A DNA stretch of 62,795 nucleotides, the filler included, from Syncephalis fuscata S228 (taxonomy: Eukaryota; Fungi; Zoopagomycota), in the NCBI GenBank assembly GCA_025786725.1. It is 3 parts of 3 records of this genome, joined end to end, with 100 filler letters (N's around TTAATTAATTAA, not from the genome) between each part and the next. Parts side by side here need not be neighbours in the genome. Positions count along the whole stretch, not along the records: positions 42,365 to 62,795 come from JAHLTZ010000165.1; 2 more parts are not named here. One strand, written 5' to 3'. Under the pieces are notes generated by a model. It worked only from the letters and a program-made list of their open reading frames with translations, made no database searches and was not told the DNA's origin. Numbering within the stretch: the stretch's first letter is position 1; each line of letters starts with the position of its first letter. The translations under genes were made by a program, and so were the position numbers. Shown here piece after piece: positions 7,824 through 61,168 of this stretch.

Positions 7824-9643
7824 CTACTGAGCAGGCAATTCCGCCAGATCTTTTAGTAAATTTTGATAAAAAGTAACACCTTCCAAATAGCCACTTTCAT
7901 ACACAAATTCATCGTGATCGTGGAGCAAGATTGGCGTGTTGCGCATCGGCGAAATGCCAAAGGCAATCAATCCAGTACCACGCACAAAGCGGGCATCTAA
8001 TTAATTGATTAATATGCCGTTTATCAATTTCATACTACAAAGTAAACTTACCTGTGGCAGCGGGAAATATTTCTGGATCAATGACAACATTACTGATCAT
8101 AATTGTTAGTATGCAATTATAGTAATTAATAATAGTGTTACTTACTGTTTCTTGCATGAATCACGTACAGCACGCCACCAAAAATTACTTTCATCCAATG
8201 ATGAATAGTCAGCACGATCACGATATTGAATAAACTCATAAGTGACGCTAACCATTACATTCATTAGTTAGAAATCTATTTATTATACAATACGCCAACT
8301 TACTCGTGCTTCTTGGCCAAATCATCTAACCAAGCGCGAAAAACAACCAAATCGGTAGTAGGTGTAATTCTTATATCGAATCCTATTAAAACTGTGTTAA
8401 TATTTTGTTATTGTTATATTTATTAGTAATTTACCAGCTTGCGCCATTTCCGGCACTACGTTGGCCTGGACACCAGACTAAACAGCAGATTTACCATTAC
8501 TTTCTATTTATATGCTCACACCATTATGCTAACCTTTAAGCTAGTAAGATTTACTGTTGTGACATCGCCCAATTTTAATTTCTTGCTGACCATAACAGCC
8601 TCTTGTTCATCACGGAATTTAAGCAAATCATTAATAAAATTCACCTGCAATTACCGATAAGCATCATTGATTAGACTAGGAATCAACAATATACTTGCCA
8701 CTTTTGGACCGACAGTATTTTGAATAAACTGGCTGCCATGGCCTGTATTTCCATGGCCTGTAACGGTAATCCACCAAGTTACACGTTCCGCATAGTATAG
8801 CTTGTAGGCATTTTCAGGATTAGCAAGACCTGTCCAGCCAAACATTAGATAGAGCCGGCTATTAATTCATTCCTACTACTAACCTTCATCCAAGCAGAAG
8901 CCAGGATTAAGTCCGGCAAATCCACCGCTTTCAATAAACGCAACCATGCCATCCTTACCACCAATTTCCTCATCTATCAAATGTTACACTAAAGCTATAG
9001 GCGGTCATTATCGATGGCTTACCTGGAACAAAAGTAAGATGTAGTGTACGACGTGGCTGCCAACCGGTCTGTTTGAGCCGACGTAGTCCTTCAGCATAAC
9101 TAAAGGTATGACGTAATCAGATATCGCCATACCAACAATGCCAAAAAATAGCAAACTTACGAAATACCAACGATTTTCATATCTTGAGCACCGCGGGCGT
9201 ATATTTTATAATCACCATCCTCTTGCAATACACGTGCTGCTCCAAATGGATCTTGCGTCCATTGATCCTAATAAAGTATTAATTGATTCATTTCAATGGA
9301 TAGCTACTATTATAGTTGACTCACTGGAAATACTGGCACCACGTCAGTGTGTGAATTGAGAATAATACTTGGCAATGAAGGTTCTGTGCCTTGCCAAGTG
9401 AGAATGACAACTGGCTTATTGGCAACCGGCTACATTGCTGGTCAGCAACAAGCAAAATGTCAAGTCAGGCTAGCGGCGACTTACTTCTACACGACGATAG
9501 TCGAAACCAATATCGTCGGCAAGTTCCTTTAGAAACGTGGCGCACGACTCATAGTCCGGCGTAGGCTGCACCGTTCGAATACGAAGGTACTTGCGGAAGT
9601 TTTCAACAGCAATAGTGTTATTTTCCTTTAGAGATAGCGCCAT
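7824..9643 (-). CDS. ACY1: Aminoacylase-1 (M20A N-acyl-L-amino-acid amidohydrolase), multi-exon
   Basis: [60 protein letters not shown] and final ...[12 protein letters not shown] introns plus one GC-AG intron (8645-8698). Confidence 0.93.
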
Positions 9644-12721: not shown

Positions 12722-17555
<4,834 letters not shown>

Positions 17556-42364: not shown

Positions 42365-42451
42365 GTTTATTTGGAATGTGATTTGCATTAAATTTATTAA
42401 ATTATTACTAAGCAACTTATCAGAAATCTAATGCAATGGAGCTTGAATAAT

Positions 42452-43002
42452 TACATTTAATAGCATTCGTGTAGTTGACCTACATATTCGGTATATTGAA
42501 CATGAAACTGGATGGTGAGTGACATCAGCCATTAAACGTTCATTATCATAGATTTACTATCCAGTACGCATATATCCTTTTTCTAATTATATCATTTCTA
42601 CGTGTACTTTATTACTATATGCAATTTTATAGTATGCTAAACGCATTCTATTTATTATAGTTTGCAATGCGTTTTAATCATTCCACTCATTGTGTGACAT
42701 GCACTATAGCTTCAAACTGCCGATTTTGTAAGTATCGCTGTATACTAAATATACCGCATATTGTTTTAGCATATGACAATGCAAATTATCTATAAATTGC
42801 TGCAGTTTGGCCCTGGATTTATTGATAGTATATCGCAACTCACATGTGTATAGAATGTTAATAGTATGTGTAGCTAGAGGATATGTGCATACTGGATAAT
42901 AGATCTATGATGATGAGTATTTGGTGATTGATGTAACTTACCACTTAGTTCCATGTCAATAAAACGAATGTGTAGTTTAATTACACAGATATGATCAAAT
43001 AT
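42452..43002. mobile_element. MITE/foldback-like element with ~125-bp imperfect terminal inverted repeats
   Basis: Left arm GTGTAGTTGACCTACATATTCGGTATATTGAACATG...TATCCAGTACGCATATATCCT. The reverse complement of the right arm is GTGTAATTAAACTACACATTCGTTTTATTGACATG...TATCCAGTATGCACATATCCT. No ORF, and exact termini/TSD are unresolved. Confidence 0.75.
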
Positions 43003-43350
43003 AGCCTCTTGATCTTTAAAACATATTAAATGTCTGGTGAGTTATTTATAAAAACAATTGGGTATTATTACACGCAGTTAGACAAAATAAAGTATATAAA
43101 CTTGTCATTATCATATTGCATATTATGTCAGTTGTATAGTTGAGCTGTTATGATTATTATGCAACGGTCCTTGTACTAGTCAAATATATTTGTACAAATG
43201 AATGCTGTGGTATCTAATTGTTGTAAATGATAAAAATCATTAATTAGATTAATGTAATATTTAATACTCATCCAAATATTACTTGTCATAGCCAGATTAT
43301 TGCCTTGAATCAGCTGCTAGTTCAAAATTGTGTTGCTGTATTTTGTTGCC

Positions 43351-46300
43351 CAAATAATGATTGCTTAATGGTTAGTATTCGTATTAGAGTACACTGATGA
43401 GTAATGCTTATAAACTGATTTATTGATACAAAAATATAAAACTAATATAAAACCACTTGTGATACTGCGAATATGGGCTAGCCCATTAAACAGGTAGCTG
43501 CTGTTCCCAGTCCCTATCAGTTCCAATATAGAACGACGGGCCCGGTGTACAGCAGTTAGTTGCTTATTGGTCCCGCCCAATGTACTATTGCCTAGAATAA
43601 AGTTAGCACTGTTTTAGTTAATTTTGCATTAACTTACCATGTTGTACAGACTTGCATTTACTTGCACTTAATGGCGCAAGTGTTCCTTTTTAGCGTTGCG
43701 CACAGCAGTGCGACGGCGCAGTCTTGAGGCGGCAGTTCGGCGAGGTCCCCCACCCCGCGGAACTACCCGATAAGTGCTGTTGATCGCAACAGCAGCCTTG
43801 GTTGGTTGAGCCGGTGCCAATTTGAGGGCGCCGGTGTATTCCACACCATCCATAGGAGTGGTGTGGATAGAGGAGGAGGAGGAGGAGCAGTAGTAATGAC
43901 TACTGAATGAAAAGCCGGAAAGGCTAGTGATGGTGGTGTTGACTGCTTTGTTGCTGCTCAAAACCTCCTCGGTTTGAACAGCAACGCTGCACAAAGCAGT
44001 CTCCGCTTGCGTTCCTACGCAGCGGATATTTGGAGGCAATAGAGCCTGTGTTGCGACTGGCACAGACTCTGGCAGCTTGGCTTTTTTCAAAGCCGGCTTA
44101 CTGCCTGCCTCAATGTCCGTCTCAGAAAACAAACGTTTCTGGACGACAGGCAATGGCATCGTAGCATAAATAATGCTACGGGTATAAACAACTGTAGCAG
44201 CCATCGCTAACTACTTTACGCTATAAAAACACACAATACATACAATTAATACCATGTAAATAGTATATGTAATGCGAATACAAACACAGCATAACCAAAT
44301 AAACTATTCAATTCAAATGGATGAACAGTTTTAAGCAAACGCCAAGAATGCACTGCACGGCTAAACAAATCAAACACAGGTGCAACGCAACGTGTTATGC
44401 AACAGCGCAACTTGGCGCAGCAATAATATTCCCATTCACTGACAAACGTAGACGCAAACGCAACACTTGCTTACCTTTAAAAAAGTTTTTATAACAAAAA
44501 ACAAGGAAATGAAACTACAATATTGTAGTAGAACAAAAAGACAAGATAAAACAAACAAGATGAAAGCGTTATAGAGATCTAAATATCAATCTTGCGCGGC
44601 TTTTTACACAATAAATTGCCACTCAACTATTTTACACTCACACACCAGTAGCTTGTACCATCATTTATTCGTATCGAGTATTTGTATGTACAACTTGTAG
44701 TATCACTATTGTCTTGTGTAGTTCAATACGAGCTCACTAACCAAAACAGGCCTGCATCGGACATGAATATCAAATGGTCCGTGTACACCTTGCTAAACCG
44801 GTAAATAGTCCAATAAACTAGATGGCGTGATCACAACAGCAAATAGACACATAACACGTGATCTTGTGTTTACTTTTCATAAATACGCCACCACCATGAT
44901 TGTCGCGTATTAATAACGCGCGTACACGGCTGAAACAATAACATACCATTTATACAATACATGTAGCTGTAATAATATATAATAATATTTATTCAAGTCA
45001 CTTGTACAAATTCTGATAGTCATGATACACAGTGTATTGCTATTTATACGATTGCTTCATTACTTAGTTGATTGATTTATATTCCAGTATATCTGTATAT
45101 TTCTAACAACCATAAACAATGCCAATGCTTTATGCAACACGTTTATATTGAAACGTGGTTTTAAAGGTGGTTTGTTGATATATGCGTTGTAGTTACCGTA
45201 GTCTTGTTATTCATATAGATAGACGTCATTTTATCTTACTGCAACCAGCTCATTGTTACAGCAGCTTTTACTAGCTTCATTGTTATATAAAAACAATAGT
45301 TGTTATTATCTATCGTATGTGAGCCTTATAACATAAACGTGTATTTAGTGGGTATAGTTGTAGTGGATTTGATATACTAGATACAATATTGCACAAGTAC
45401 TTGGCAGTATATTTATGTATACACAGGCAATTATGTACTTAGTTATACTCGGCAGCATTATTAGTAGTAGCTGCCTTTGCTTTGTGCTTTAACATAAATT
45501 ATAAGCTGTCCGATTATCAGTAGATTATTGATGTATTAATAGTTTAGTTGCTTGAATGCGCTGGTATCCGGATCGGTTGGCATTATACCAAAATAACTAG
45601 CTTGTTTTAATAATCTCGAATGTTCAAGCATAATTATAATTTGTTGATATCGTATCCTAAACAGCATATGTTTGCTATTCTGCCTATATGGGAACGAAGT
45701 GTGAGACTGCATTTGGTTGGTTATCGTAACGTTGCAACGTCAGCAACTAAGCTATACCTTGATCGACATTATTAGTGGTTCTGTTTCTATTGCTTATACG
45801 TTTTGCTTTTGTTTAAGTAGCTATGAAGCACGTTGTGATTATTTTCTAATGAGCAATATAAAAGGCTTGTAACACCTATTTACTTCACCTCTTTAACCGA
45901 CATTATACTATAATAGCAACACCTACTTTAAATGGTGCATGCTATTAGCGGCAAAGTTCTATGCATACACGTAATGAGCAATTGAAGCGGCCTAAGTTGA
46001 GCCTTTCAACAAACATAGCTAGCAACAAGTAGGCTACTTTTACAAATAACGCATAGCTATTAGACTATGCAGCGTGTAAATAAAACAATATGGAAAAGAA
46101 AAGTGTATGAATAGTAGTGTTAACGTTATAGTGTTATACATGCATGAACGAACGAGTGAAATAAACAAAATGCATAACGAGTAGGGCTAGCGCCAGACGG
46201 TAAAACAGTTTCAAAAAAAGTACAGTTACTATATACTAAAGTGAGCATAAAATGGAAAGAATATGAAAACGGTGTTTGAGTTATTAAGCATATATGCATG

Positions 46301-46777
46301 ATCAATGAGCGGAATTAGTCGACATTTATAAATAATAAAGCTAGAACAAAAATAAAAGCAGTTTTGGATAGAGTGATGCCAAGAGATTATGGAACGATAT
46401 ATAAAATGATAAACGTACGGTGAAAAAGTATATAAAACAATATCAAAGTTACAGTGTGTATAGCGTAATGAGCATAATGAGCAAAGTTTATTGCAGCATA
46501 TAATGAATAAAATGTACTTAATATATCATAAAATGATATATAGTAGTGTGTAACAGAATGGGAATGATATAAACAAATAGAGCATATATACATACTAAAT
46601 GATAAATCTATGATGATGGGTATTTAATGATTGATGTTGCTTACCACCCATCATGTTCAGTAGATTGGATATTATTAAATTTAGTCATTTGACCACCAAG
46701 CAAACAATAAATGTGATGATGCGCTGATTAAATAAAACTCACCACTTGCCCCATGTTCAATAGATTGAATGTGCAGT
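43351..46777 (-). repeat. Left arm of 3427-bp inverted repeat
   Basis: Reverse complement of 52549-55975. Paired coordinates sum to 99326 at both ends and at all three paired ORFs, whose translations are identical. Confidence 0.97.
43668..44204 (-). CDS. Orphan 178-aa low-complexity protein (NLS, tandem TQ/VQT motifs, Arg-rich end), copy 1
   Basis: GC-rich ORF in AT-rich surroundings, with a 5'-UTR intron and a downstream GT-AG intron. Identical to 55122-55658. Confidence 0.65.
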   Translation of the reverse strand: MAATVVYTRSIIYATMPLPVVQKRLFSETDIEAGSKPALKKAKLPESVPVATQALLPPNIRCVGTQAETALCSVAVQTEEVLSSNKAVNTTITSLSGFSFSSHYYCSSSSSSIHTTPMDGVEYTGALKLAPAQPTKAAVAINSTYRVVPRGGGPRRTAASRLRRRTAVRNAKKEHLRH

Positions 46778-46891
46778 TCAATTACATTATTATTTATACA
46801 TAAAAACTATTGCGCTGCACTAAAATTTGATATTTATTAATAAAACTAACAAATAGAACAAATAGTTTGCAGAGTGATTTCTAACAATTGT

Positions 46892-49609
46892 TCAGTAAGT
46901 ACACGAAGCAAATAATTCTGTTAAGTACTTACAATTTTTGTTATTTTTTAACGAAGGTTGCTCGCTACTTGCATCTGACGAACGCGCGCGTTTAATACCA
47001 TGTTGATCCACAGGAACAGCAAGATGGTCTTGAGCTGCACTTTCCACGTTTGATGCAATTGAATTTTCGCCTGATTCTTCGACACTGTTTATTGCTATTT
47101 CTTCTTCCTTTTCAACGGGCTCTTCCTTTTCTACTGCCACTTCTTCTTGTTGTTCAGCTTCTGTATTTTCATTTGCATCTACCTTCTCAACGTTCTTTAC
47201 TTTTCTTCTTCTTTTTTATCCAATGTGTCTTGAATTGATTTTGGATTGCTGGATTCTTTTAAAGGTTCTGTAAACCAAGCACTCTCTAAGGCCTGTTCCA
47301 CTGTCAAGCGTGAATTGCGATCAATGGCTAGAAGACCGCGAACTAAATTGCGTGCTATAAAAATTAAAATTAGCTCATTTGTAGCATTGTTTTAAAATAT
47401 GCTTACCTTCTTTGGATACACTCTTCCAAAGATCACCAAATACCAATGGGCTATTTAAGACATTGATAATGTAGCTTCCATACTTGTTTTTGGTATCATA
47501 TGTATATGGCATCGTATCTAAATTAAAACAATAAATTAACAAGCTTATCAATTTACAAATACTTACTTGACAGAAGAGCATGTAATGTAACACCAAGGCT
47601 CCATTGGTCTGCATCCTTGCCATATCCTTGCTCAGTAAATTGTGATCCACATAGTATATTCTTTAAACTGCGCTCATTTCGCAGTATAATTTCAATTATT
47701 TTGTCATTATTCTTGGACCGAAGAATAACGTCCGGTGCCATATATCCAATAGTACCACATATGCCATTAATCGTTGGATTTTTTGAGACAAGTTTGCGCG
47801 CCAAACCAAAATCTGTAATAACGATAGACGGATATTTGGCATGTTGTCGGAGTAAGATATTCTCCAGCTAGCATATGGTTAGAATTAAAGATAATAAATT
47901 TAAGCCTTCATTTAGTTAATTACCTTAATATCTAAATAGTAGCAATAGTAGCAATAGCAATAATAAATTTGTTAATTATGTAAATAAACACTGTTTTTAA
48001 CTTACCCAAATGTACAATGTTTCTATCGTGAAGATGCTAGTTCGACGTTAGTAACTGATTATTAATTAAAATTATTGCTTACTTTAACACCATTTAATAT
48101 TTGTTGAAATATGTATTTGGCCTCTTGTTCGGGTAATGGGCCATGGCACATGCAATAATTGAACAAGTTGCCACCATTTAAATATTCAAGTATCAAATAG
48201 CTGTGCAGTTCTGTGTTGTGTGCACCAACTAGTTTGATAATACTTGAATGTTCTTGTGCTGCAATGATCATATCTTTTTCTTCATCAAAGATATTAAAAT
48301 GACCATTATTTGCTGCGCCTTTGGCCTTTTGCTTTTTAGATATTTTGGCAGCAATAGGCATTTTATTACGGCGCGTCTCGCCGTAATAAACCTCGCCAAA
48401 GCCGCCACTAAATTGGAGTTAGAAACAATATAATTTAAATAATAAATACTTACGCGCCAAGCTGCTGAGTTGTGACGGCATATCGACTGTTAATGACCTA
48501 TAATTGTGTTAGTTGTTATAATTAGCGTTACTGTAATATTAATGACTTACGGCGTCGAAATCATGGCTTTGATCGTCAGTTTTTAGCGCTAAGCTTTCAA
48601 CTTTGTATGCAATGTAGCATACTGCTATTGTTGATTAGTTTGATTACTATATGTTGATGAAACTTACCGTTAAATCCAACAGGATTTATAAAACTTTTAT
48701 TCTCGATGGTGCATGTGATGTTGGGCGAAACAGCAACACCATTTACTGAATATATAATTAGCATTTTAATAATTTTAATGATTGCTATTTACCCAGTATA
48801 TCCTTGGTCATGAAATTCTAATTACACAATTAGCATTATTATTAACTATTATGATGAATACTTACTGAGATCATTAAAAGATCGTTAATTTAAATATACA
48901 TTATCATTGTTATTACTGCCATTTTAGCACAAATTTGCGTGATACTTACTATAAATACCGAAAACCACCCGTTTTGATATTCCTTTTGTTCAGCACATTT
49001 GCTAAATAGCACAAAAATTATATTAATAAATTTATACAATATGATTCATTGATATCATGTGTAGACTAACTAATCAATTATTTAATGTCTCCACATCTTT
49101 TATGCAGCAATGTGCCATAGTATTATAACAATAAACACTACTACCACACATCGTACAACTTACTTTGCCGTGTTTTGCCCAAGGATGCATATCTCGTCTT
49201 TTTTTAACAAATACTCTTTGAATAAATGATTATTTTAAATTATTCATTAGCAATATATCCACTTACCTGTTCTATTTTCATCAAATGTTTCTAGCCAGCC
49301 CACTACCTCTAAACGCTCTGCTTCGCTCAATTGCGACCATGCCGCAGGAAGCTTCTCATATATGCCTTCTACAGCATCGTTTGATGTGGCAAACGGCAAA
49401 GCAAGAGCAGGTATACAAGCCGTGTTTGTCACTTGAACTGCTGAAGATAACTCATTGGAATCATCTTCAGCAGTAGAATGTGTAGTTGGTTCAACTACGT
49501 TTAACTCGGATAAAAAAAATGATGATGCTGACGAGGATGAGGATGAAAAAGAACTAGCTGCATCTGAAGTAGCGGCTGTAGAAAGAAATGGATTTGCTAA
49601 GCTATCCAT
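46892..49609 (-). CDS. FHA-like + Ser/Thr kinase of the Mek1/Chk2(Rad53/Dun1) group, divergent
   Basis: S/T-rich N-terminus, degenerate FHA (CILGQ...ILVNGVAV), LGA|GGFGEV, IAAK, EYLNGGNLF, HLHDRNIVHLD|IK|LENILL, YPSIVITDFGLAR, CGTIGYMAPD, YGKDADQWSLGV and an acidic tail. 8-nt micro-exon at 47924-47931. One A-run frameshift near 47200, and FHA splicing is uncertain. Confidence 0.85.
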
Positions 49610-51099
49610 AGTGTTTATGTGTGATTTTAGATATTCAAAAATTGTTCAAATACTGCAAGATAAAGGCAGAATGTAAGTACACTATGATAAAGCAAGTACA
49701 ATGTCTTTGCAAAGATGAAAATGCGTATATAGTATTATATGATTTCAACTGACGCACACGCTTTATTTTTGATAATATCGCTACGCTGGCAAACGCTGCC
49801 TGTGACTCATGGCATATTTGCGAGAGCAATATTCGCGTAACTCTGATTAAGGGCACTAATGTATTTTAAAATTTTAATTGGCTAGTATATGAAACATATA
49901 CCACCAAGCTACTGATAGCTGGACTTGCGGTTTTGTTCGCGATAACGCCATCGACCAATTAGGATACGAACAGTGCGCGCACATACACTAGCGCAATTTA
50001 CCCACTTCCGGTCTCAACATTCTAACTATCATCTGCGCACCAATGATGAATTATTTGCATTAGAGTTTGAATACCAAACAATTTTATGAAATGTTGCAGA
50101 TATAAGCAATACGAGACAACAGCTCATTTGAATATTAAATAGTGTTTATTAGTCTCATTTTGTAGCCACAATGCAGTAGAATGCTTATATGAAGTTATAT
50201 AAACATATACTATTGATGGTGTACGATAAAACGGTCATGAATATGGATGATGTTGCAACATTAGTGCAATTTAAACTCCGATTTAAACAGTTCGGCTTTT
50301 TGACAAAGAAAGTCGTCAGCTGGATGAAACTGTCCGTAAATGGACGGTTACACGTACTCGGGAATGCAACTTTGAAAAAACCCCAGAAATTTGGTTTATG
50401 AAAAACAAAGTGTTTGGTTTTATTTAAGGTCACTAAATACCGGTTAATGTCAGGTATTAATTAATTTTAAGTTGATCATGCATATTCATCAACTGATGAT
50501 GTTATAAATAGCATAATTGTTTTTAAATTTTAATACACAATGCACACAGTGTGCTAATCTTTCTAGTTAGCTTGTATATTTGCTGGCACTAGTATATACA
50601 CGCTCATTAAAAAAAGGTGTTACCCCGATTCAAAAGCAGCTACCCTGATTCAGTTAGTTCCGCGATTGTACTACCATGATAGGCAACTCGTATCGGCATT
50701 GCCTGTCCACACACACTGAACAATTTTCCAGTAAGCTCTACATCCGCATTCGGACATTTTTTGTTTCGCCGAACCATCGCACGGTTCAATTGGATAAAGT
50801 GGCACTCTGTCTTGCAATGACGTGCTTTCTTAGTGAGTTAGCCATGTACGCTACACGATATCACACAGCATTTCCTTCTTTAAGCCGGTTTATTCCGCTT
50901 TTTTGTCTGTCTCATTGTGACGATGGATTCAATTCATTGGATGGTATTACATGCCTGCTTTCACACTAATACATACAATGGCCTATATAAAGCACTTGCA
51001 TTACTCACTGAATCCACAACCTCAACTACGCCTTTTATTTCTACGCTATTCTTTAACTAATTACCAAACACATTCCGTCATTCTGTACATTCGTAGACT

Positions 51100-51900
51100 G
51101 TAATGCTAAGTATTATTCAAATATTTATATGGCGCACTGTAAACCGCTTGCTTGTGAAGCCATACACTATACAACTGCTTGGCATATTTAACTTGTTTAA
51201 AGCAAGTAAAATAGTCGAATAAACCACTGTGCAAAGATCGACAGCACGATGCTAAAGCATTTTGATCTATGCTGTAGACCACTGTGTATTGTATGGTGGT
51301 GTTTGTATGTATAAGCTCAGGTGGGCATTATGTATATCAACACTCCTTGCTTGTGGACAATGATTGACAGCCATCATAGTGGCATCATTGTTTTTAACAG
51401 TTGAAGTACATTTATTGGCACAGCTTTGATTTAAAGTATTATAGTGGTTTTACTATCTAAGCTGTTGTCTTTAACTGTCTAGAATGGTGGTGTAGCTGTG
51501 TTGGCTGTTTTGTGTTGTAACAATGTGCTATTGCGCTATCATTGTTGTATTCTAGATTTCTTGTTTGTATGTAGATGGCCTAGACGTGGGTAAGTGGTCA
51601 GTGCTATTGGTTGTTCGTTTGTGTTTATCTAATCATGTATGTCGCTTGGCTGAATAGTTTTCTGATATTGCTTGTGTTATAAGCAATGACAAAACAGCAG
51701 CCACAGCGCATCGTGATTATGATAGCTGAAGACCATATAGATCAGCACTGATGGGTGGGAGTCCAGGTTATCAACATACATCAAGTAGGCCATTCCTGGT
51801 GCAGTTGTTTTGCTATGATTGCATGTAGACTGTTGAATGCTACAGATATTTATTTAAATTTGGCAACAAAACGACGTAGTGACCATTATAAAGGTAAATA
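51100..51900 (+). pseudogene. Possible heavily decayed membrane-protein gene in the IR core
   Basis: TATATAAA at ~50984, hydrophobic fragments (NGGVAVLAVLCCNNVL) and a GTAAGT donor at ~51590, resembling the 30-31 kb relic. Many stops. Confidence 0.3.
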
Positions 51901-52548
51901 TCATTGTTTTTTACTGAACACTTGCTAATACGGAACAACATGCATTGATGAATGTCTGCTAAAATTGTGCTTATGCATACTGTACTAGCATGCACAGGTC
52001 GTAAGAATCAATATATTACTAACTGTTCAGCAATCTAATATGATCACTGCTGGAAACTTGAGCCAACGTAAATTATGCACTCTACTCGATATTATTTCGA
52101 CTTTATTTACTTATGCTAAAGATGTATATGTAAACTGGAATTTAAACAGCTTTTCTTTTTCACCATGGCCCATATCTTTATTAATACAATAAAAATATTT
52201 TGGTTATATTCTATAACATCTGTGGACAATGCAATGTCACAATGCCACTTCTTTGAATCATGAGTTAGCATGCTAGTACAACTACAAATATATTATCTAT
52301 TTAGCAGTAATATCAGTAATTTGTTTAGTTAGCTGTATTATTTATACTAATAAGCATGTGTTGTGTGATATTTCTTTTAGTTGTAATATAAAAGTATGTG
52401 AACCATGTTATTCATTAAATTAAACGACATACATGATGTGCTTAAAATATTTTATGTATTTTATTATAAAACTATTTTATAACATCTATTAACTATTTAA
52501 TGTAATTTGGGAACAAATGAATAAATATAGCAGTATTCGTATAATTGC

Positions 52549-55500
52549 ACTGCACATTCAATCTATTGAACATGGGGCAAGTGGTGAGTTTTATTTAATC
52601 AGCGCATCATCACATTTATTGTTTGCTTGGTGGTCAAATGACTAAATTTAATAATATCCAATCTACTGAACATGATGGGTGGTAAGCAACATCAATCATT
52701 AAATACCCATCATCATAGATTTATCATTTAGTATGTATATATGCTCTATTTGTTTATATCATTCCCATTCTGTTACACACTACTATATATCATTTTATGA
52801 TATATTAAGTACATTTTATTCATTATATGCTGCAATAAACTTTGCTCATTATGCTCATTACGCTATACACACTGTAACTTTGATATTGTTTTATATACTT
52901 TTTCACCGTACGTTTATCATTTTATATATCGTTCCATAATCTCTTGGCATCACTCTATCCAAAACTGCTTTTATTTTTGTTCTAGCTTTATTATTTATAA
53001 ATGTCGACTAATTCCGCTCATTGATCATGCATATATGCTTAATAACTCAAACACCGTTTTCATATTCTTTCCATTTTATGCTCACTTTAGTATATAGTAA
53101 CTGTACTTTTTTTGAAACTGTTTTACCGTCTGGCGCTAGCCCTACTCGTTATGCATTTTGTTTATTTCACTCGTTCGTTCATGCATGTATAACACTATAA
53201 CGTTAACACTACTATTCATACACTTTTCTTTTCCATATTGTTTTATTTACACGCTGCATAGTCTAATAGCTATGCGTTATTTGTAAAAGTAGCCTACTTG
53301 TTGCTAGCTATGTTTGTTGAAAGGCTCAACTTAGGCCGCTTCAATTGCTCATTACGTGTATGCATAGAACTTTGCCGCTAATAGCATGCACCATTTAAAG
53401 TAGGTGTTGCTATTATAGTATAATGTCGGTTAAAGAGGTGAAGTAAATAGGTGTTACAAGCCTTTTATATTGCTCATTAGAAAATAATCACAACGTGCTT
53501 CATAGCTACTTAAACAAAAGCAAAACGTATAAGCAATAGAAACAGAACCACTAATAATGTCGATCAAGGTATAGCTTAGTTGCTGACGTTGCAACGTTAC
53601 GATAACCAACCAAATGCAGTCTCACACTTCGTTCCCATATAGGCAGAATAGCAAACATATGCTGTTTAGGATACGATATCAACAAATTATAATTATGCTT
53701 GAACATTCGAGATTATTAAAACAAGCTAGTTATTTTGGTATAATGCCAACCGATCCGGATACCAGCGCATTCAAGCAACTAAACTATTAATACATCAATA
53801 ATCTACTGATAATCGGACAGCTTATAATTTATGTTAAAGCACAAAGCAAAGGCAGCTACTACTAATAATGCTGCCGAGTATAACTAAGTACATAATTGCC
53901 TGTGTATACATAAATATACTGCCAAGTACTTGTGCAATATTGTATCTAGTATATCAAATCCACTACAACTATACCCACTAAATACACGTTTATGTTATAA
54001 GGCTCACATACGATAGATAATAACAACTATTGTTTTTATATAACAATGAAGCTAGTAAAAGCTGCTGTAACAATGAGCTGGTTGCAGTAAGATAAAATGA
54101 CGTCTATCTATATGAATAACAAGACTACGGTAACTACAACGCATATATCAACAAACCACCTTTAAAACCACGTTTCAATATAAACGTGTTGCATAAAGCA
54201 TTGGCATTGTTTATGGTTGTTAGAAATATACAGATATACTGGAATATAAATCAATCAACTAAGTAATGAAGCAATCGTATAAATAGCAATACACTGTGTA
54301 TCATGACTATCAGAATTTGTACAAGTGACTTGAATAAATATTATTATATATTATTACAGCTACATGTATTGTATAAATGGTATGTTATTGTTTCAGCCGT
54401 GTACGCGCGTTATTAATACGCGACAATCATGGTGGTGGCGTATTTATGAAAAGTAAACACAAGATCACGTGTTATGTGTCTATTTGCTGTTGTGATCACG
54501 CCATCTAGTTTATTGGACTATTTACCGGTTTAGCAAGGTGTACACGGACCATTTGATATTCATGTCCGATGCAGGCCTGTTTTGGTTAGTGAGCTCGTAT
54601 TGAACTACACAAGACAATAGTGATACTACAAGTTGTACATACAAATACTCGATACGAATAAATGATGGTACAAGCTACTGGTGTGTGAGTGTAAAATAGT
54701 TGAGTGGCAATTTATTGTGTAAAAAGCCGCGCAAGATTGATATTTAGATCTCTATAACGCTTTCATCTTGTTTGTTTTATCTTGTCTTTTTGTTCTACTA
54801 CAATATTGTAGTTTCATTTCCTTGTTTTTTGTTATAAAAACTTTTTTAAAGGTAAGCAAGTGTTGCGTTTGCGTCTACGTTTGTCAGTGAATGGGAATAT
54901 TATTGCTGCGCCAAGTTGCGCTGTTGCATAACACGTTGCGTTGCACCTGTGTTTGATTTGTTTAGCCGTGCAGTGCATTCTTGGCGTTTGCTTAAAACTG
55001 TTCATCCATTTGAATTGAATAGTTTATTTGGTTATGCTGTGTTTGTATTCGCATTACATATACTATTTACATGGTATTAATTGTATGTATTGTGTGTTTT
55101 TATAGCGTAAAGTAGTTAGCGATGGCTGCTACAGTTGTTTATACCCGTAGCATTATTTATGCTACGATGCCATTGCCTGTCGTCCAGAAACGTTTGTTTT
55201 CTGAGACGGACATTGAGGCAGGCAGTAAGCCGGCTTTGAAAAAAGCCAAGCTGCCAGAGTCTGTGCCAGTCGCAACACAGGCTCTATTGCCTCCAAATAT
55301 CCGCTGCGTAGGAACGCAAGCGGAGACTGCTTTGTGCAGCGTTGCTGTTCAAACCGAGGAGGTTTTGAGCAGCAACAAAGCAGTCAACACCACCATCACT
55401 AGCCTTTCCGGCTTTTCATTCAGTAGTCATTACTACTGCTCCTCCTCCTCCTCCTCTATCCACACCACTCCTATGGATGGTGTGGAATACACCGGCGCCC

Positions 55501-55975
55501 TCAAATTGGCACCGGCTCAACCAACCAAGGCTGCTGTTGCGATCAACAGCACTTATCGGGTAGTTCCGCGGGGTGGGGGACCTCGCCGAACTGCCGCCTC
55601 AAGACTGCGCCGTCGCACTGCTGTGCGCAACGCTAAAAAGGAACACTTGCGCCATTAAGTGCAAGTAAATGCAAGTCTGTACAACATGGTAAGTTAATGC
55701 AAAATTAACTAAAACAGTGCTAACTTTATTCTAGGCAATAGTACATTGGGCGGGACCAATAAGCAACTAACTGCTGTACACCGGGCCCGTCGTTCTATAT
55801 TGGAACTGATAGGGACTGGGAACAGCAGCTACCTGTTTAATGGGCTAGCCCATATTCGCAGTATCACAAGTGGTTTTATATTAGTTTTATATTTTTGTAT
55901 CAATAAATCAGTTTATAAGCATTACTCATCAGTGTACTCTAATACGAATACTAACCATTAAGCAATCATTATTTG
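52549..55975 (+). repeat. Right arm of 3427-bp inverted repeat
   Basis: Reverse complement of 43351-46777. Begins inside a long-TIR family arm and ends abutting another (TTTG|TGTAATTGAAC). Confidence 0.97.
55122..55658 (+). CDS. Orphan 178-aa low-complexity protein, copy 2
   Basis: 5'-UTR intron ~54852-55106 (GTAAGC...TATAG), ORF, intron 55689-55734 and AATAAA at ~55902. Identical to copy 1. Confidence 0.65.
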   Translation: MAATVVYTRSIIYATMPLPVVQKRLFSETDIEAGSKPALKKAKLPESVPVATQALLPPNIRCVGTQAETALCSVAVQTEEVLSSNKAVNTTITSLSGFSFSSHYYCSSSSSSIHTTPMDGVEYTGALKLAPAQPTKAAVAINSTYRVVPRGGGPRRTAASRLRRRTAVRNAKKEHLRH

Positions 55976-56102
55976 TGTAATTGAACCAGGAATTTGTTTT
56001 ATTTACTATGGGACTGGATGGTAAATAGCATAAAATATCAAAATAATCATTGTATACGCACTCTATCATATAGCATTCCATTGTTTACTAATTACACGAT
56101 AT
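55971..56102 (+). repeat. Short degenerate copy of the long-TIR family at the IR outer junction
   Basis: ATTTGTGTAATTGAACCAGGAATTTGTTTTATTTACTATGGGACTGGATGGTAA resembles the family arm. An inverted TAATTACACGAT lies at ~56089-56100. Confidence 0.6.
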
Positions 56103-56226: not shown

Positions 56227-57275
56227 TTACTGTTTGGTGTTCTGTTTAAGCTTTTCATTGAAAAGAGATTGTGTAAACGTCCATAAATTATCTTGTAGAG
56301 TTTCATCTTGTGCATAGCTACTGGGAGTTGATAGTTTGCCGTATGGAATAAAGTATTTGCCATTGTACCCTTTTTCCTTTACTTCATCCGACGTAGCAGC
56401 ATAAAGCGAAGTCAACGCACCATTTGCCGATGACATAGAAAACAAACCATAAAACAATTTGTTTCCTTGGTTTACAATCCAGCCATGAGAATCTTCAACA
56501 TTGCGACCAAGGTCAGAGCTGACTATTCCTGGATGCACTGCGTTGACTAGGACTGTTGGACGGTCAGTGCCCTGTGAAACTTGTCTGGCAAATTGGCTAG
56601 AGGCTAGGATATTGGCCAATTTTGACTGGCCGTAGCACCTCATCGAGCCAAATGCTTTTTTGTCATTAATAGCCTCCAAAGTAAGACCAACACCGCCACT
56701 GTACGTATAATAATGTCCCATGCTAGCAGTAAAAATGATGCGTGCAGGATCGTCAGCGGTGCCGCTATTAAGGATGGTTGGCAATAGGCGATGCGTAAAT
56801 AGCGTTGGACCAACGTGGTTTACTCCAAATTGCGATTCGATCCCGTCTTCAGTCAACGCATAAGGCATTGCCATTATACCGGCATTATTGATAAGTATAT
56901 GAATCTGTGATTCGGCAGCTATTAACTCCTTCGCCGCAGCATCAACTTTAGCAAGACTGTTTAAATCCAAAGCTAGAAATCGAAGATCGGGTTCTGCTTT
57001 GTTTTCAGTACAGTTCTTTTTAATGTCCTCTTTAATCTTCTCAATGGCCGTTTGTGCACGCTCTTCATTGCGGCAGGCAACATACACTCGGCTCCCATTC
57101 CTGGCTAGCTCCAAGGCAATATGGTAGCCAATACCCGTGTTGGCGCCAGTAACAACAGAGACCTATGGAATAACAAATAGATTAGAGAGTAGCCAAGAAT
57201 AAATACACTAAACTGTACCTTTCCCGTTAGGTCTGGAATCTTTTCAGTGGTATATTCTTTGCATAACCAACCCAT
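56227..57275 (-). CDS. Short-chain dehydrogenase/reductase (RDH12/WWOX-like), 2 exons
   Basis: IPDLTGK|VSVVTGANTGIG, LINNAGIM, QFGVNHVG, catalytic YGQSK and VHPG. Confidence 0.95.
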
Positions 57276-60661: not shown

Positions 60662-61168
60662 TTAAATAGAAATGCTGACACTTTTTTGAGCAGAAGTAAG
60701 ACGAGAGCCGATGTTAATATCGGCACAGTTTTCGTAGTGCTCAATTTTGCCTGGGCCCAAATGAGCGGCATTCCACACCCAGCGAATGACCTTGCGACCG
60801 CTAATACCAGCTGGAATGTTGACGGTCCATGGGCCAACCTTGCCTGGAGCAGCACAGTTGTTCTTTTGGGCAATACGACGGGCATTGCCGAGATTAGTGT
60901 CTAAGATATAGACCTCGCACATACCGATATGTGGAGCAGTGATGGTAAAACCGAGCGTAACGCTGCGGCCCACGTTGGTGACTCGGCCAGCCGGCTCACC
61001 ACGACAAACGCCTCGAGCGTTGGGATTTTTCAAATCGTCAATTCTGGTTGATGCTTTTTCGATAGCACGCGGAGTTGGGCTGGACATGTAGCCATGGGCA
61101 GCAACATCCGAGATTGCAGAGAGTGCCACAATGGCAAGCAGGCAGAGAGTGGCACCAATGCGAACCAT
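60662..61168 (-). CDS. Secreted His-brace LPMO-like protein (intronless)
   Basis: Signal peptide ending VAA|HGYMSSPTPR (His1), second His in APHIGMCEV, then IRWVWNAAH and EHYENCADI with an axial Tyr candidate. Confidence 0.85.
   Translation of the reverse strand: MVRIGATLCLLAIVALSAISDVAAHGYMSSPTPRAIEKASTRIDDLKNPNARGVCRGEPAGRVTNVGRSVTLGFTITAPHIGMCEVYILDTNLGNARRIAQKNNCAAPGKVGPWTVNIPAGISGRKVIRWVWNAAHLGPGKIEHYENCADINIGSRLTSAQKSVSISI

Follow-up and report, generated by a model that had tools for sequence, protein, structure and literature searches.

Organization of the palindromic cassette

The window, a 62,795-nucleotide stretch assembled from three records of the Syncephalis fuscata S228 genome (Zoopagomycota; GCA_025786725.1) with filler letters between the parts, contains a palindromic cassette of about 12.6 kb. 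A repeat search and a base-by-base check found that the left arm (43351-46777) and the right arm (52549-55975) are perfect reverse complements over 3427 bp, with 0 mismatches and no indel, and that the coordinates of paired arm positions sum to 99326. The preliminary description had reported this palindrome, its coordinates and its outward-pointing arm genes correctly. Outside both ends of the inverted repeat, the identity between the arms is lost at once. The arms enclose a single-copy spacer, or core, of 5771 bp (46778-52548). Each arm is composed of kinase-gene 3' flank and a complete 178-aa gene unit with a conserved upstream block, and both 178-aa ORFs point outward. The features of the locus are as follows.

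42437..43019, unstranded: inverted pair of E200 repeats in the left flank (42437-42653, minus; 42847-43019, plus), by nhmmer profile search and repeat search
43351..46777, minus: left arm, by repeat search and base check, with paralog homology through its outer boundary
43668..44204, minus: left 178-aa arm gene, by ORF search (Syncephalis-specific family)
44221..44474, minus: putative 5'-UTR intron of the arm gene, 254 nt, by sequence and paralog alignment
44750..44990, minus: conserved upstream block of the left arm, about 550-790 bp before the ATG, by paralog alignment
46279..46777, minus: inner ~500 bp of the left arm, kinase-gene 3' flank, by paralog comparison
46504..46707, plus: full-length E200 at the inner end of the left arm, 70 bp from that end, by nhmmer
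46707-46773: partial E200 after the left full copy, by nhmmer
46794..49609, minus: intron-bearing protein-kinase gene (start 49609, stop codon 46794-46796)
49626..52546, unstranded: non-coding, conserved stretch of the core on the upstream side of the kinase, by paralog comparison
52509-52619: partial E200 that crosses the arm boundary and reaches 40 bp into the core, by nhmmer
52540-52548 and 55976-55984: imperfect 9-bp direct repeat around the right arm, TATAATTGC (TATAATTGA in GCA) and TGTAATTGA
52549..55975, plus: right arm, the inverted copy, by repeat search and base check, flanked by the 9-bp direct repeat
52619..52822, minus: full-length E200 at the inner end of the right arm, by nhmmer
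54336..54576, plus: right-arm copy of the conserved upstream block, mirror of 44750-44990 (sum 99326)
55122..55658, plus: right 178-aa arm gene, by ORF search, mirror of the left copy

The 9-mer flanking the right arm also follows the left arm, as its reverse complement. The cassette is carried by a short contig, which extends 986 bp outward from the left arm before it ends. The whole cassette also occurs in a second sequence, contig JAHLTZ010000052.1 (contig 52) of GCA_025786725.1; there it is collinear, has the same outer and inner boundaries, and its arms of 3434 bp are 99.8% identical. Since all four boundaries recur in contig 52, the cassette is almost certainly no chimera of a single assembly. 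Its two flanks are unique and run collinear with this second sequence, and the left flank is also about 99% identical to a paralogous segment. The two sequences may represent two haplotypes of one culture rather than independent strains. Chance does not account for a perfect inverted repeat of 3.4 kb, for which there is no chance expectation.

Arm gene and its upstream region

Homologs of the arm protein were found in S. fuscata only, in a family of about five diverged loci. The dN/dS ratio of the arm gene against its paralog P0002 is 0.31, and the gene is under purifying selection. No Pfam domain was found in the 178-aa protein, a search of the ESM Atlas returned no usable match, and the AlphaFold2 model had no secondary structure (pLDDT 46) and gave no confident fold. 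The protein contains 2 TQ and 0 SQ motifs, which rules out an SQ/TQ cluster and with it the TQ-rich kinase partner that had been proposed from the first inspection.

The donor (AAAG|GTAAGC) and acceptor (TATAG|) of the putative intron upstream of the ORF are kept in all five paralog loci. This conserved GT...AG pair is consistent with the 5'-UTR intron of the preliminary description, as predicted from sequence. Further upstream, identity among paralogs is 86-95% for the block at 44750-44990, against 72-80% for their ORFs. ACGCG-type motifs and a CACGTG box occur in the block, which probably serves as a promoter or a cis-regulatory module. The block gave no signal of RNA structure (z -1.1 and -0.4, 0 compensatory pairs). 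No Rfam match was obtained in the block, the arms or the core at E<=1, and no tRNA was found in the arms or the core.

Core kinase gene

The core kinase is the ortholog of a 598-aa S. fuscata protein, P0006, which served as the stand-in for the spliced model, the exons in the window being searched separately. Its stop codon lies 16 nt from the arm boundary. The multi-exon gene is intact and is conserved in four paralogs. The domain matches Pfam Pkinase at E = 3e-56 and has a non-RD catalytic loop (HLD), with the DFG motif and a VAIK-type lysine present. DAPK1, CaMK1, Chk2 and MSK1 all score about 1e-31 against it, and from these similarities the domain is classed as a generic CAMK-like kinase of the CAMK group. 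For the FHA domain, Pfam gave no match at E<=10 on residues 1-230, and no GR...SxxH signature was visible in the alignment. A profile search of solved structures returned a weak best hit (6hc0/6hc1, E = 0.34). The AlphaFold2 model placed beta strands at residues 100-200 with low pLDDT there (52-62; 43 overall) and was too poor for a fold search. With four CAMK kinases tied, a negative Pfam search and a best structural E of 0.34, the earlier designation as an FHA kinase of the Mek1/Chk2 type was not upheld.

The segment at 46279..46777 shares 73-76% identity with the kinase-paralog 3' flanks of L010, L011 and L012; for that at 49626..52546, identity is 88.5% with L011, 94-97% with L012 and 73% with L010. 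Within the second segment, about 2.9 kb long, small ORFs lacked Pfam matches and no Rfam match was found. Hidden coding exons were considered for this segment and rejected, since tblastx similarity occurs in all frames and the small ORFs match no Pfam domain.

E200 repeats at the arm boundaries

E200 is a dispersed repeat of about 200 bp. In five of five cassettes, each arm has a full copy at a distance of 0-200 bp from its inner boundary, always turned with the same end towards the core. The inverted E200 pair in the left flank lies downstream of the left arm gene, and the same pair is found downstream of the paralogs in L002, L003 and L007; it belongs to the ancestral arm-gene unit.

Related cassettes in the genome

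By following the arm-gene and kinase families, at least five related palindromic cassettes were found in the genome, with arms of 0.3 to 3.4 kb. A kinase cassette on contig 51 is built on a separate inverted repeat (at least 2514 bp, 98.2%), with a boundary shifted by about 126 bp relative to the window cassette. The preliminary description had proposed a search for co-occurrence of the kinase and the arm gene elsewhere, and both are together in this second palindrome. A palindrome with 3020-bp, 100% identical arms surrounds an intact hexokinase gene (479 aa), and another with arms of about 2.37 kb (99%) surrounds peptidase fragments; both carry sequence of the arm-gene unit. On contig 38, a near-identical kinase core (5.4 kb, 97%) sits without the arm gene in a different gene neighbourhood, within a minimal inverted repeat of about 300 bp; the tract of high identity stops 4 bp from the arm boundary on one side and 335 bp short of it on the other. 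Across the cassettes, the arms are related and the cores are not.

Homology with the paralogous units V (L002) and L011 continues through position 43351 into the left flank. Because it passes through this outer boundary, the left arm is considered to be in its native context. On the inner side of the right arm, window positions 49626-53047 align contiguously at 86% identity with the contig 51 kinase cassette (P0009) across the junction between core and arm. This junction is also crossed by homology in L012 and is common to the diverged kinase cassettes of contigs 51 and 38.

Concerted evolution and age of the repeat

A four-way alignment of the window and contig 52 arms contains 24 sites at which the two sequences differ but the two arms of each sequence agree; the pattern was already apparent in the inner 958 bp. 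Arm-specific sites numbered 0 in the window and 6 in the contig 52 arms of GCA_025786725.1, four of the six being 1-bp indels. The arms of one sequence are thus more alike than orthologous arms of different sequences, and since the 24 differences are common to both arms of each, the arms evolve in concert. This pattern directly shows the arm-to-arm gene conversion that had earlier been put forward as a capability of long inverted repeats; frequent intrachromosomal conversion keeps the arms identical. Consensus polishing with cross-mapped reads could exaggerate their perfect identity but would not readily generate 24 of 24 shared substitutions. GC-biased conversion was not evident among the six polarisable sites, of which four changed from G/C to A/T and two from A/T to G/C.

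The repeat is not young, because it is shared with a sequence 0.5-2% different and its junction with cassettes that are 14-34% diverged. It predates the split of the window and contig 52 sequences, contrary to the 'very recent duplication' initially listed among other readings. Between the window and contig 52, the core differs by 1.9-2.2% and the arms and flanks by 0.5-0.8%, a threefold higher divergence for the core, and the core copies of the window, contig 52 and contig 38 are equidistant. A simple palindrome model leaves both the threefold divergence of the core and its equidistance from the contig 38 copy unexplained.

Orientation of the core

The core has the same orientation in the window and in contig 52. 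Among paralogous cassettes the orientation differs: the native flank is on the kinase-upstream side on contig 51 and on the kinase 3' side in the window, so that the core is inverted between them. At its end, contig 34 repeats the hexokinase cassette's flank and arm at 99.1-99.7% identity, and there the core is entered from the side opposite to that on contig 71; this flipped end could be a repeat-induced misjoin. The flip-flop inversion suggested for the core finds indirect support in the contig 51 paralog and in the hexokinase sister, but the locus itself shows a single orientation in both sequences. As the arms are identical, the first 3.4 kb on either side of the core read the same in both orientations, so that inversion is probably a neutral by-product rather than a switch. 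No cell-type regulator domain (HMG, homeodomain or alpha-box) was found; Pfam gave only the protein kinase in the core and nothing in the arm ORFs.

Origin and maintenance of the cassette

Collectively, the cassette is probably a real and long-lived palindrome with arms homogenised by gene conversion, in which outward growth from an E200 seed and occasional inversion of the core would also have taken part. An inverted E200 pair on either side of the kinase probably seeded the repeat. The repeat would then have grown outward by repair synthesis or template switching, and the arm-gene unit would have been copied from its native left side to the right side, a step that the 9-bp direct repeat around the right arm may mark. 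Crossovers between the arms would occasionally invert the core. The paralogous cassettes seem to capture different stages of such a history: a 0.3-kb seed, arms measuring 2.4 to 3.4 kb, displaced boundaries, and cores that have been flipped.

Several other accounts were weighed against this one. A chimeric inverted join or a collapsed repeat, arising in assembly or amplification, might produce perfectly identical arms on a short contig that ends soon after the left arm, with a left flank almost identical to a paralogous segment, but all four junctions are present in an independent contig, the flanks are both unique and collinear, and the same architecture occurs in four further cassettes; an artefact is thus extremely unlikely. 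Absence of mismatches over 3427 bp would equally be expected of a one-off inverted duplication whose arms are identical merely through youth. We consider this highly improbable given the same repeat and boundaries in a second, diverged sequence, the 24 substitutions common to both arms within each sequence, and the junction shared with much older cassettes. The cassette might instead be a mobile or copy-pasting unit, with the kinase core, with or without the arms, as cargo, the E200-containing inverted repeats as element ends and the palindrome as a terminal repeat. The core on contig 38, with its different neighbourhood, its tract ending 4 bp from the arm boundary and its short inverted repeat, speaks for mobility, as do the diverged whole cassette on contig 51, the imperfect direct repeat around the right arm and the three equidistant core copies, which suggest exchange among them. 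This account nevertheless appears unlikely: Pfam detected no transposase or recombinase domain in the arms or the core, the L012 repeat ends have no target-site duplication and no direct repeat is common to the cassette's outer flanks, the 9-mer brackets one arm and not the whole cassette, paralogous-unit homology passes the left outer boundary, the contig 38 tract stops 335 bp before the arm boundary on its other side, and the copies are few and diverged rather than a high-copy family. The selfish or mobile two-gene module of the preliminary description meets the same objections, and in addition the arm-gene family also surrounds hexokinase and peptidase cores and the kinase core exists elsewhere without the arm gene.

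A functional invertible element, acting as a regulated flip/flop switch or as a centromere of the inverted-repeat type built around a mid core, would resemble the flip/flop mating-type (MAT) loci and the centromeres of Komagataella phaffii and Candida tropicalis in architecture (PMC5720833, PMC5010909, PMC7292649), and would suit cores that are inverted in sister and paralogous cassettes and arms that are related between cassettes when cores are not. It is very unlikely, as the cores, in contrast to the gene-free cores of centromeres, are full of intact conserved genes (the kinase and the 479-aa hexokinase), no domain of mating-type kind was detected, inversion alters no sequence context within 3.4 kb, and the locus has one orientation in both sequences. 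The long-lived palindrome with converting arms may also be one member of a genome-wide system, in which gene-bearing palindromes are seeded by E200 pairs, grow, persist by conversion, invert, and swap or copy their cores between loci. The 97%-identical core on contig 38, with its tract ending at the arm boundary, and the three equidistant core copies speak for such exchange. We regard this wider proposal as doubtful; if true, repeat-bounded gene cassettes would be shuffled by recombination with no transposase, and the Syncephalis-specific arm-gene unit would be favoured as an arm constituent or might even drive the process. Palindromic cassettes of the kind described here interrupt assemblies, as at two contig ends in this genome, and can lead gene counting and annotation astray.

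Comparison with known systems

A literature search found nothing on the assembly accession, and the papers naming S. fuscata leave its genome structure undescribed. Sex-chromosome palindromes such as P6 of the human Y have gene-bearing arms that are kept alike by intrachromosomal gene conversion, and their spacers are sometimes inverted (PMC3723533; review PMC3403216). The S. fuscata cassette is similar in its gene-carrying inverted arms, its unique spacer, and an identity between arms (99.8-100%) that exceeds the orthologous identity. It differs in that it measures kilobases rather than tens to hundreds of kilobases, lies in a fungal and presumably recombining genome, has several related cassettes with a common short dispersed repeat at the inner boundaries, and gives no evident sign of GC-biased conversion at its six polarisable sites.

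Centromeres of K. phaffii and C. tropicalis have inverted repeats of 2-5 kb around a unique mid region of 1-10 kb and are orientation-polymorphic by repeat recombination; in C. tropicalis, the repeats are related between loci and the cores are unique (PMC5010909, PMC7292649). The relatedness of arms and not of cores between S. fuscata cassettes recalls the latter. In contrast to these yeast centromeres, the S. fuscata cores hold intact protein-coding genes and the arm gene is under purifying selection. An inverted-repeat-type centromere, whose mid core would be gene-free, untranscribed and bound by CenH3, is accordingly very unlikely, the kinase gene here and the hexokinase gene in the sister core both being intact. 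At the mating-type locus of Ogataea polymorpha, a pair of inverted repeats lets the enclosed segment invert reversibly between flip and flop (PMC5720833). The cassette differs from that locus in having no MAT genes, no known neighbouring silencing region through which orientation could matter, and one orientation in both sequences.

In the plastid inverted repeat, gene conversion homogenises the copies, the borders advance into and retreat from adjacent unique sequence, and flip-flop isomers occur. Unlike it, the S. fuscata locus is nuclear, with multiple small cassettes and a boundary shift of about 126 bp. The most familiar palindromes maintained by gene conversion are those of sex chromosomes and plastids and those at a small number of yeast centromeres and MAT loci. 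The S. fuscata cassette provides a compact, sequence-level example in an early-diverging mycoparasitic fungus, with two versions that show concerted evolution directly, and it can serve as a small natural model for the origin, growth and persistence of inverted repeats and for their effects on the genes between them.

A second copy of the palindrome rules out a single-assembly chimera

A repeat search found a single large inverted repeat in the piece. When 43351-46777 and 52549-55975 were compared base by base, the two arms proved to be perfect reverse complements over 3427 bp (0 mismatches, 0 indels, coordinate sum 99326), so the coordinates in the preliminary description were exact. Directly beyond both arm ends, about half of the positions mismatch.

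Features of the palindrome (window coordinates)
43668-44204, minus strand: arm-gene ORF of the left arm, 178 aa, pointing outward
46778-52548: core, 5771 bp
46794-49609, minus strand: kinase gene, ortholog of the 598-aa database protein P0006
55122-55658, plus strand: arm-gene ORF of the right arm, 178 aa, pointing outward

An exact look-up of the arm protein returned only GCA_025786725.1, contig JAHLTZ010000052.1 (contig 52). This result and the names of the homologs make the window either a close relative or a second haplotype of S. fuscata (Zoopagomycota). The piece is collinear with this contig from 42365 to at least 58900, and via locus L001 to 62795; the remainder of the contig 52 locus was retrieved using P0006. 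Contig 52 also carries the palindrome (arms 3434 bp long, 99.8% identical), and all four junction sequences are identical to those of the window, which excludes a chimera peculiar to one assembly. The right arm is bracketed by an imperfect 9-bp direct repeat (8/9 in contig 52), and the reverse complement of the right-arm 9-mer stands after the left arm. The left arm lies in its native context, because homology with two other loci, unit V (a third copy of the arm-gene protein P0001) and L011 (contig 51), continues through 43351.

Relative to the window and unit V, contig 52 lacks about ten single bases across its left flank and left arm (equivalent to window 42600-43900). The deletion equivalent to 43881 frameshifts the left-arm ORF, and no gene is called there for that reason. 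Given that the unique left flank is also full of 1-bp deletions, the frameshift may be an assembly error, and the deletions are probably consensus errors. In its non-coding core, contig 52 further contains a tandem duplication of 467 bp (93%), at record-forward 14272-14738 and 14979-15446; it is missing from the window, with a gap of ~710 bp near window 51200-51530.

In the window, the right flank of the palindrome holds a short-chain dehydrogenase gene and a 168-aa protein, at 56227-57275 and 60662-61168. In the latter, the N-terminus is hydrophobic (by eye, a putative secretion signal) and a His adjoins the presumed cleavage site. It also matches LPMO_10/AA9 weakly (4.8e-09), so this protein of a mycoparasite may be a lytic polysaccharide monooxygenase.

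The arms evolve in concert

Both window arms and both contig 52 arms were placed in a four-way alignment. At 24 sites the window differs from contig 52, yet both arms agree within each sequence. No site differs between the window arms; the contig 52 arms differ at 6 sites, 4 of which are 1-bp indels, including three one-bp deletions in the left arm, one of them breaking the ORF. If the arms did not convert each other, a change arising after the split would be confined to a single arm. The 24 shared differences therefore indicate that the repeat predates the split between window and contig 52 and undergoes homogenisation, bearing out the proposed gene conversion between arms.

Related cassettes and probable inversion of the core

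Further cassettes, i.e. inverted arms with an enclosed core, were found in GCA_025786725.1.

Related cassettes
Contig 71: arms of 3020 bp, 100% identity; hexokinase gene in the core; P0002 in each arm, pointing inward
Contig 12: arms of about 2.37 kb, 99%; peptidase-S8 fragments in the core
Contig 51 (contig end): repeat of at least 2514 bp, 98.2%, around kinase paralog P0009
Contig 38: repeat of ~300 bp, 92%; core with kinase P0156, 97% identical to the window core; without the arm gene

The contig 12 arms consist of the P0003 upstream region plus the first 12 nt of P0003, and a decayed arm-gene unit adjoins the contig 51 repeat. Around kinase paralog P0007 (contig 27) and arm-gene paralog P0005 (contig 13), a large repeat is absent. 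Window 49626-53047 aligns contiguously with contig 51 across the core/right-arm junction (86%), and the contig 38 alignment also crosses it; this junction therefore predates the divergence of the three kinase cassettes. Together with the age of the repeat relative to the window/contig 52 split, this contradicts the suggestion of a very recent duplication.

The preliminary description had also raised the possibility of an invertible core. In contig 51, the native flank of the arm-gene unit, which shares homology with window 42767-43350 that continues through the outer boundary, lies on the kinase-upstream side; in the window it is found 3' of the kinase. At least one inversion of the core therefore separates these two cassettes, and the palindrome can probably invert. 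The kinase cassette has one core orientation, common to window and contig 52. The last 12 kb of contig 34 are a 99.1-99.7% copy of the hexokinase-cassette flank and arm, and the final 196 bp enter the core from the end opposite to contig 71, representing either an inversion polymorphism or a misjoin.

Between window and contig 52 (L008), substitution divergence reached 1.9-2.2% for the core (46778-52548), three times the level of the arms (0.70-0.76%) and flanks (0.5-0.6%). The three core copies, in window, contig 52 and contig 38, stand at equal distances from one another, with 107, 118 and 119 differences across 4492 sites. Changes specific to one lineage occur in clusters, e.g. around 47451-47700 and 49451-49700, and the 97%-identity tract of contig 38 stops 4 bp from the left arm boundary. 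Ectopic conversion among copies, core copying between cassettes and a raised mutation rate of the spacer are possible explanations.

The kinase and the non-coding core

The stop codon of the kinase gene (46794-46796) and the arm boundary are only 16 nt apart. The kinase domain is CAMK-like, matching DAPK1, CaMK1, Chk2 and MSK1 all at ~1e-31, and has an HLD (non-RD) catalytic loop, the DFG motif and the VAIK-type lysine. Its description as an FHA kinase of Mek1/Chk2 type is unproven, because these scores are generic, Pfam gave no FHA match in residues 1-230 even at E<=10, the best profile match of the N-terminal region to solved structures was weak (E 0.34, to 6hc0/6hc1, an FHA-domain entry), and the AlphaFold2 model was poor (pLDDT 43). 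In the exon at 47565-47867, 11/101 residues differ from P0006, most of them in an insert after the APE motif that varies among paralogs too; fast or diversifying evolution or a conversion tract could account for them.

The remaining core, 49626-52546, is conserved non-coding DNA (88.5% identity to L011, 73% to L010, a further kinase-paralog locus). Its tblastx similarity is present in every frame, and its small ORFs gave no Pfam matches.

The arm gene

Homologs of the arm protein carried only Syncephalis fuscata names, on contigs of GCA_025786725.1, and form a small family (P0001-P0005) seen in S. fuscata only. The protein has no Pfam domain and no secondary structure predicted by AlphaFold2; its N-terminus and basic C-terminus are conserved in the family alignment, and dN/dS against P0002 was 0.31. 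With 2 TQ and 0 SQ, it does not deserve the label TQ-rich. A GT...AG pair conserved across five family loci in the DNA alignment fits a putative 254-nt 5'-UTR intron at 44474-44221. There may also be a short 3'-UTR intron at 43592-43637, where a conserved ATG|GTAAGT donor 30 nt past the stop is joined by a branch-like CTAAC and, 46 nt downstream, by an AG.

A block of about 240-290 bp (window 44750-44990 and 54336-54576; L002, the unit V locus, ~9230-9470; L003 ~9215-9455), about 550-790 bp before the ATG, is 86-95% identical among paralogs vs 72-80% for the ORFs (dS 0.6). ACGCG-type motifs and a CACGTG box occur in this block, which gave no Rfam match or RNA-structure signal and reads as a conserved putative promoter module. 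The inner ~500 bp of each arm are homologous to the 3' flank of kinase paralogs.

Paralogs P0003 (L005/L009) and P0005 (L007) look decayed: in P0003 an in-frame TGA stands in place of the Arg of other paralogs, in P0005 two 1-nt deletions are separated by 221 nt, and the database protein models bridge these defects. Unit V has VPS9 and FancD2 as neighbours, on the contig that also carries the cassette, 44 kb away. Upstream of unit V (L002 1100-5750), units of ~1.1 kb in both orientations, 93-100% identical and with sub-repeats of 11 bp and 22 bp, form an array 4.6 kb long.

E200 and the proposed origin of the cassettes

A profile search of about 170 kb gave 36 matches to E200, a dispersed ~200-bp repeat (roughly one copy per 5 kb sampled).

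E200 in the window (a further 30 matches in L002-L012)
42437-42653
42847-43019
46504-46773
52509-52822

E200 is unclassified: it matched neither tRNAs nor Rfam families, and target-site duplications were not seen. In 5/5 cassettes, each arm has a complete E200 at 0-200 bp from its inner end, always turned the same way relative to the core, and the contig 38 repeat is little beyond E200 itself. An inverted E200 pair thus probably seeded the repeat, which would then have extended outward via repair synthesis or template switching, its junctions presumably forming with microhomology during this growth. E200 also bounds the arm-gene unit itself, as a single copy at about -2.3 kb and, on the downstream side, as an inverted pair, which would explain why units entered arms in either orientation. 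A mobile module, as had been proposed, is a minority possibility: Pfam found no transposase domain in arm or core ORFs, and neither the whole cassette nor the contig 38 repeat is flanked by a target-site duplication.

Collectively, the palindrome is real and old, is kept homogeneous through gene conversion, and adds a new fungal example to a known class of structures, within a small cassette family. Its nearest parallels are Y-chromosome palindromes (PMC3723533), yeast inverted-repeat centromeres (PMC5010909, PMC7292649) and flip/flop MAT loci (PMC5720833).
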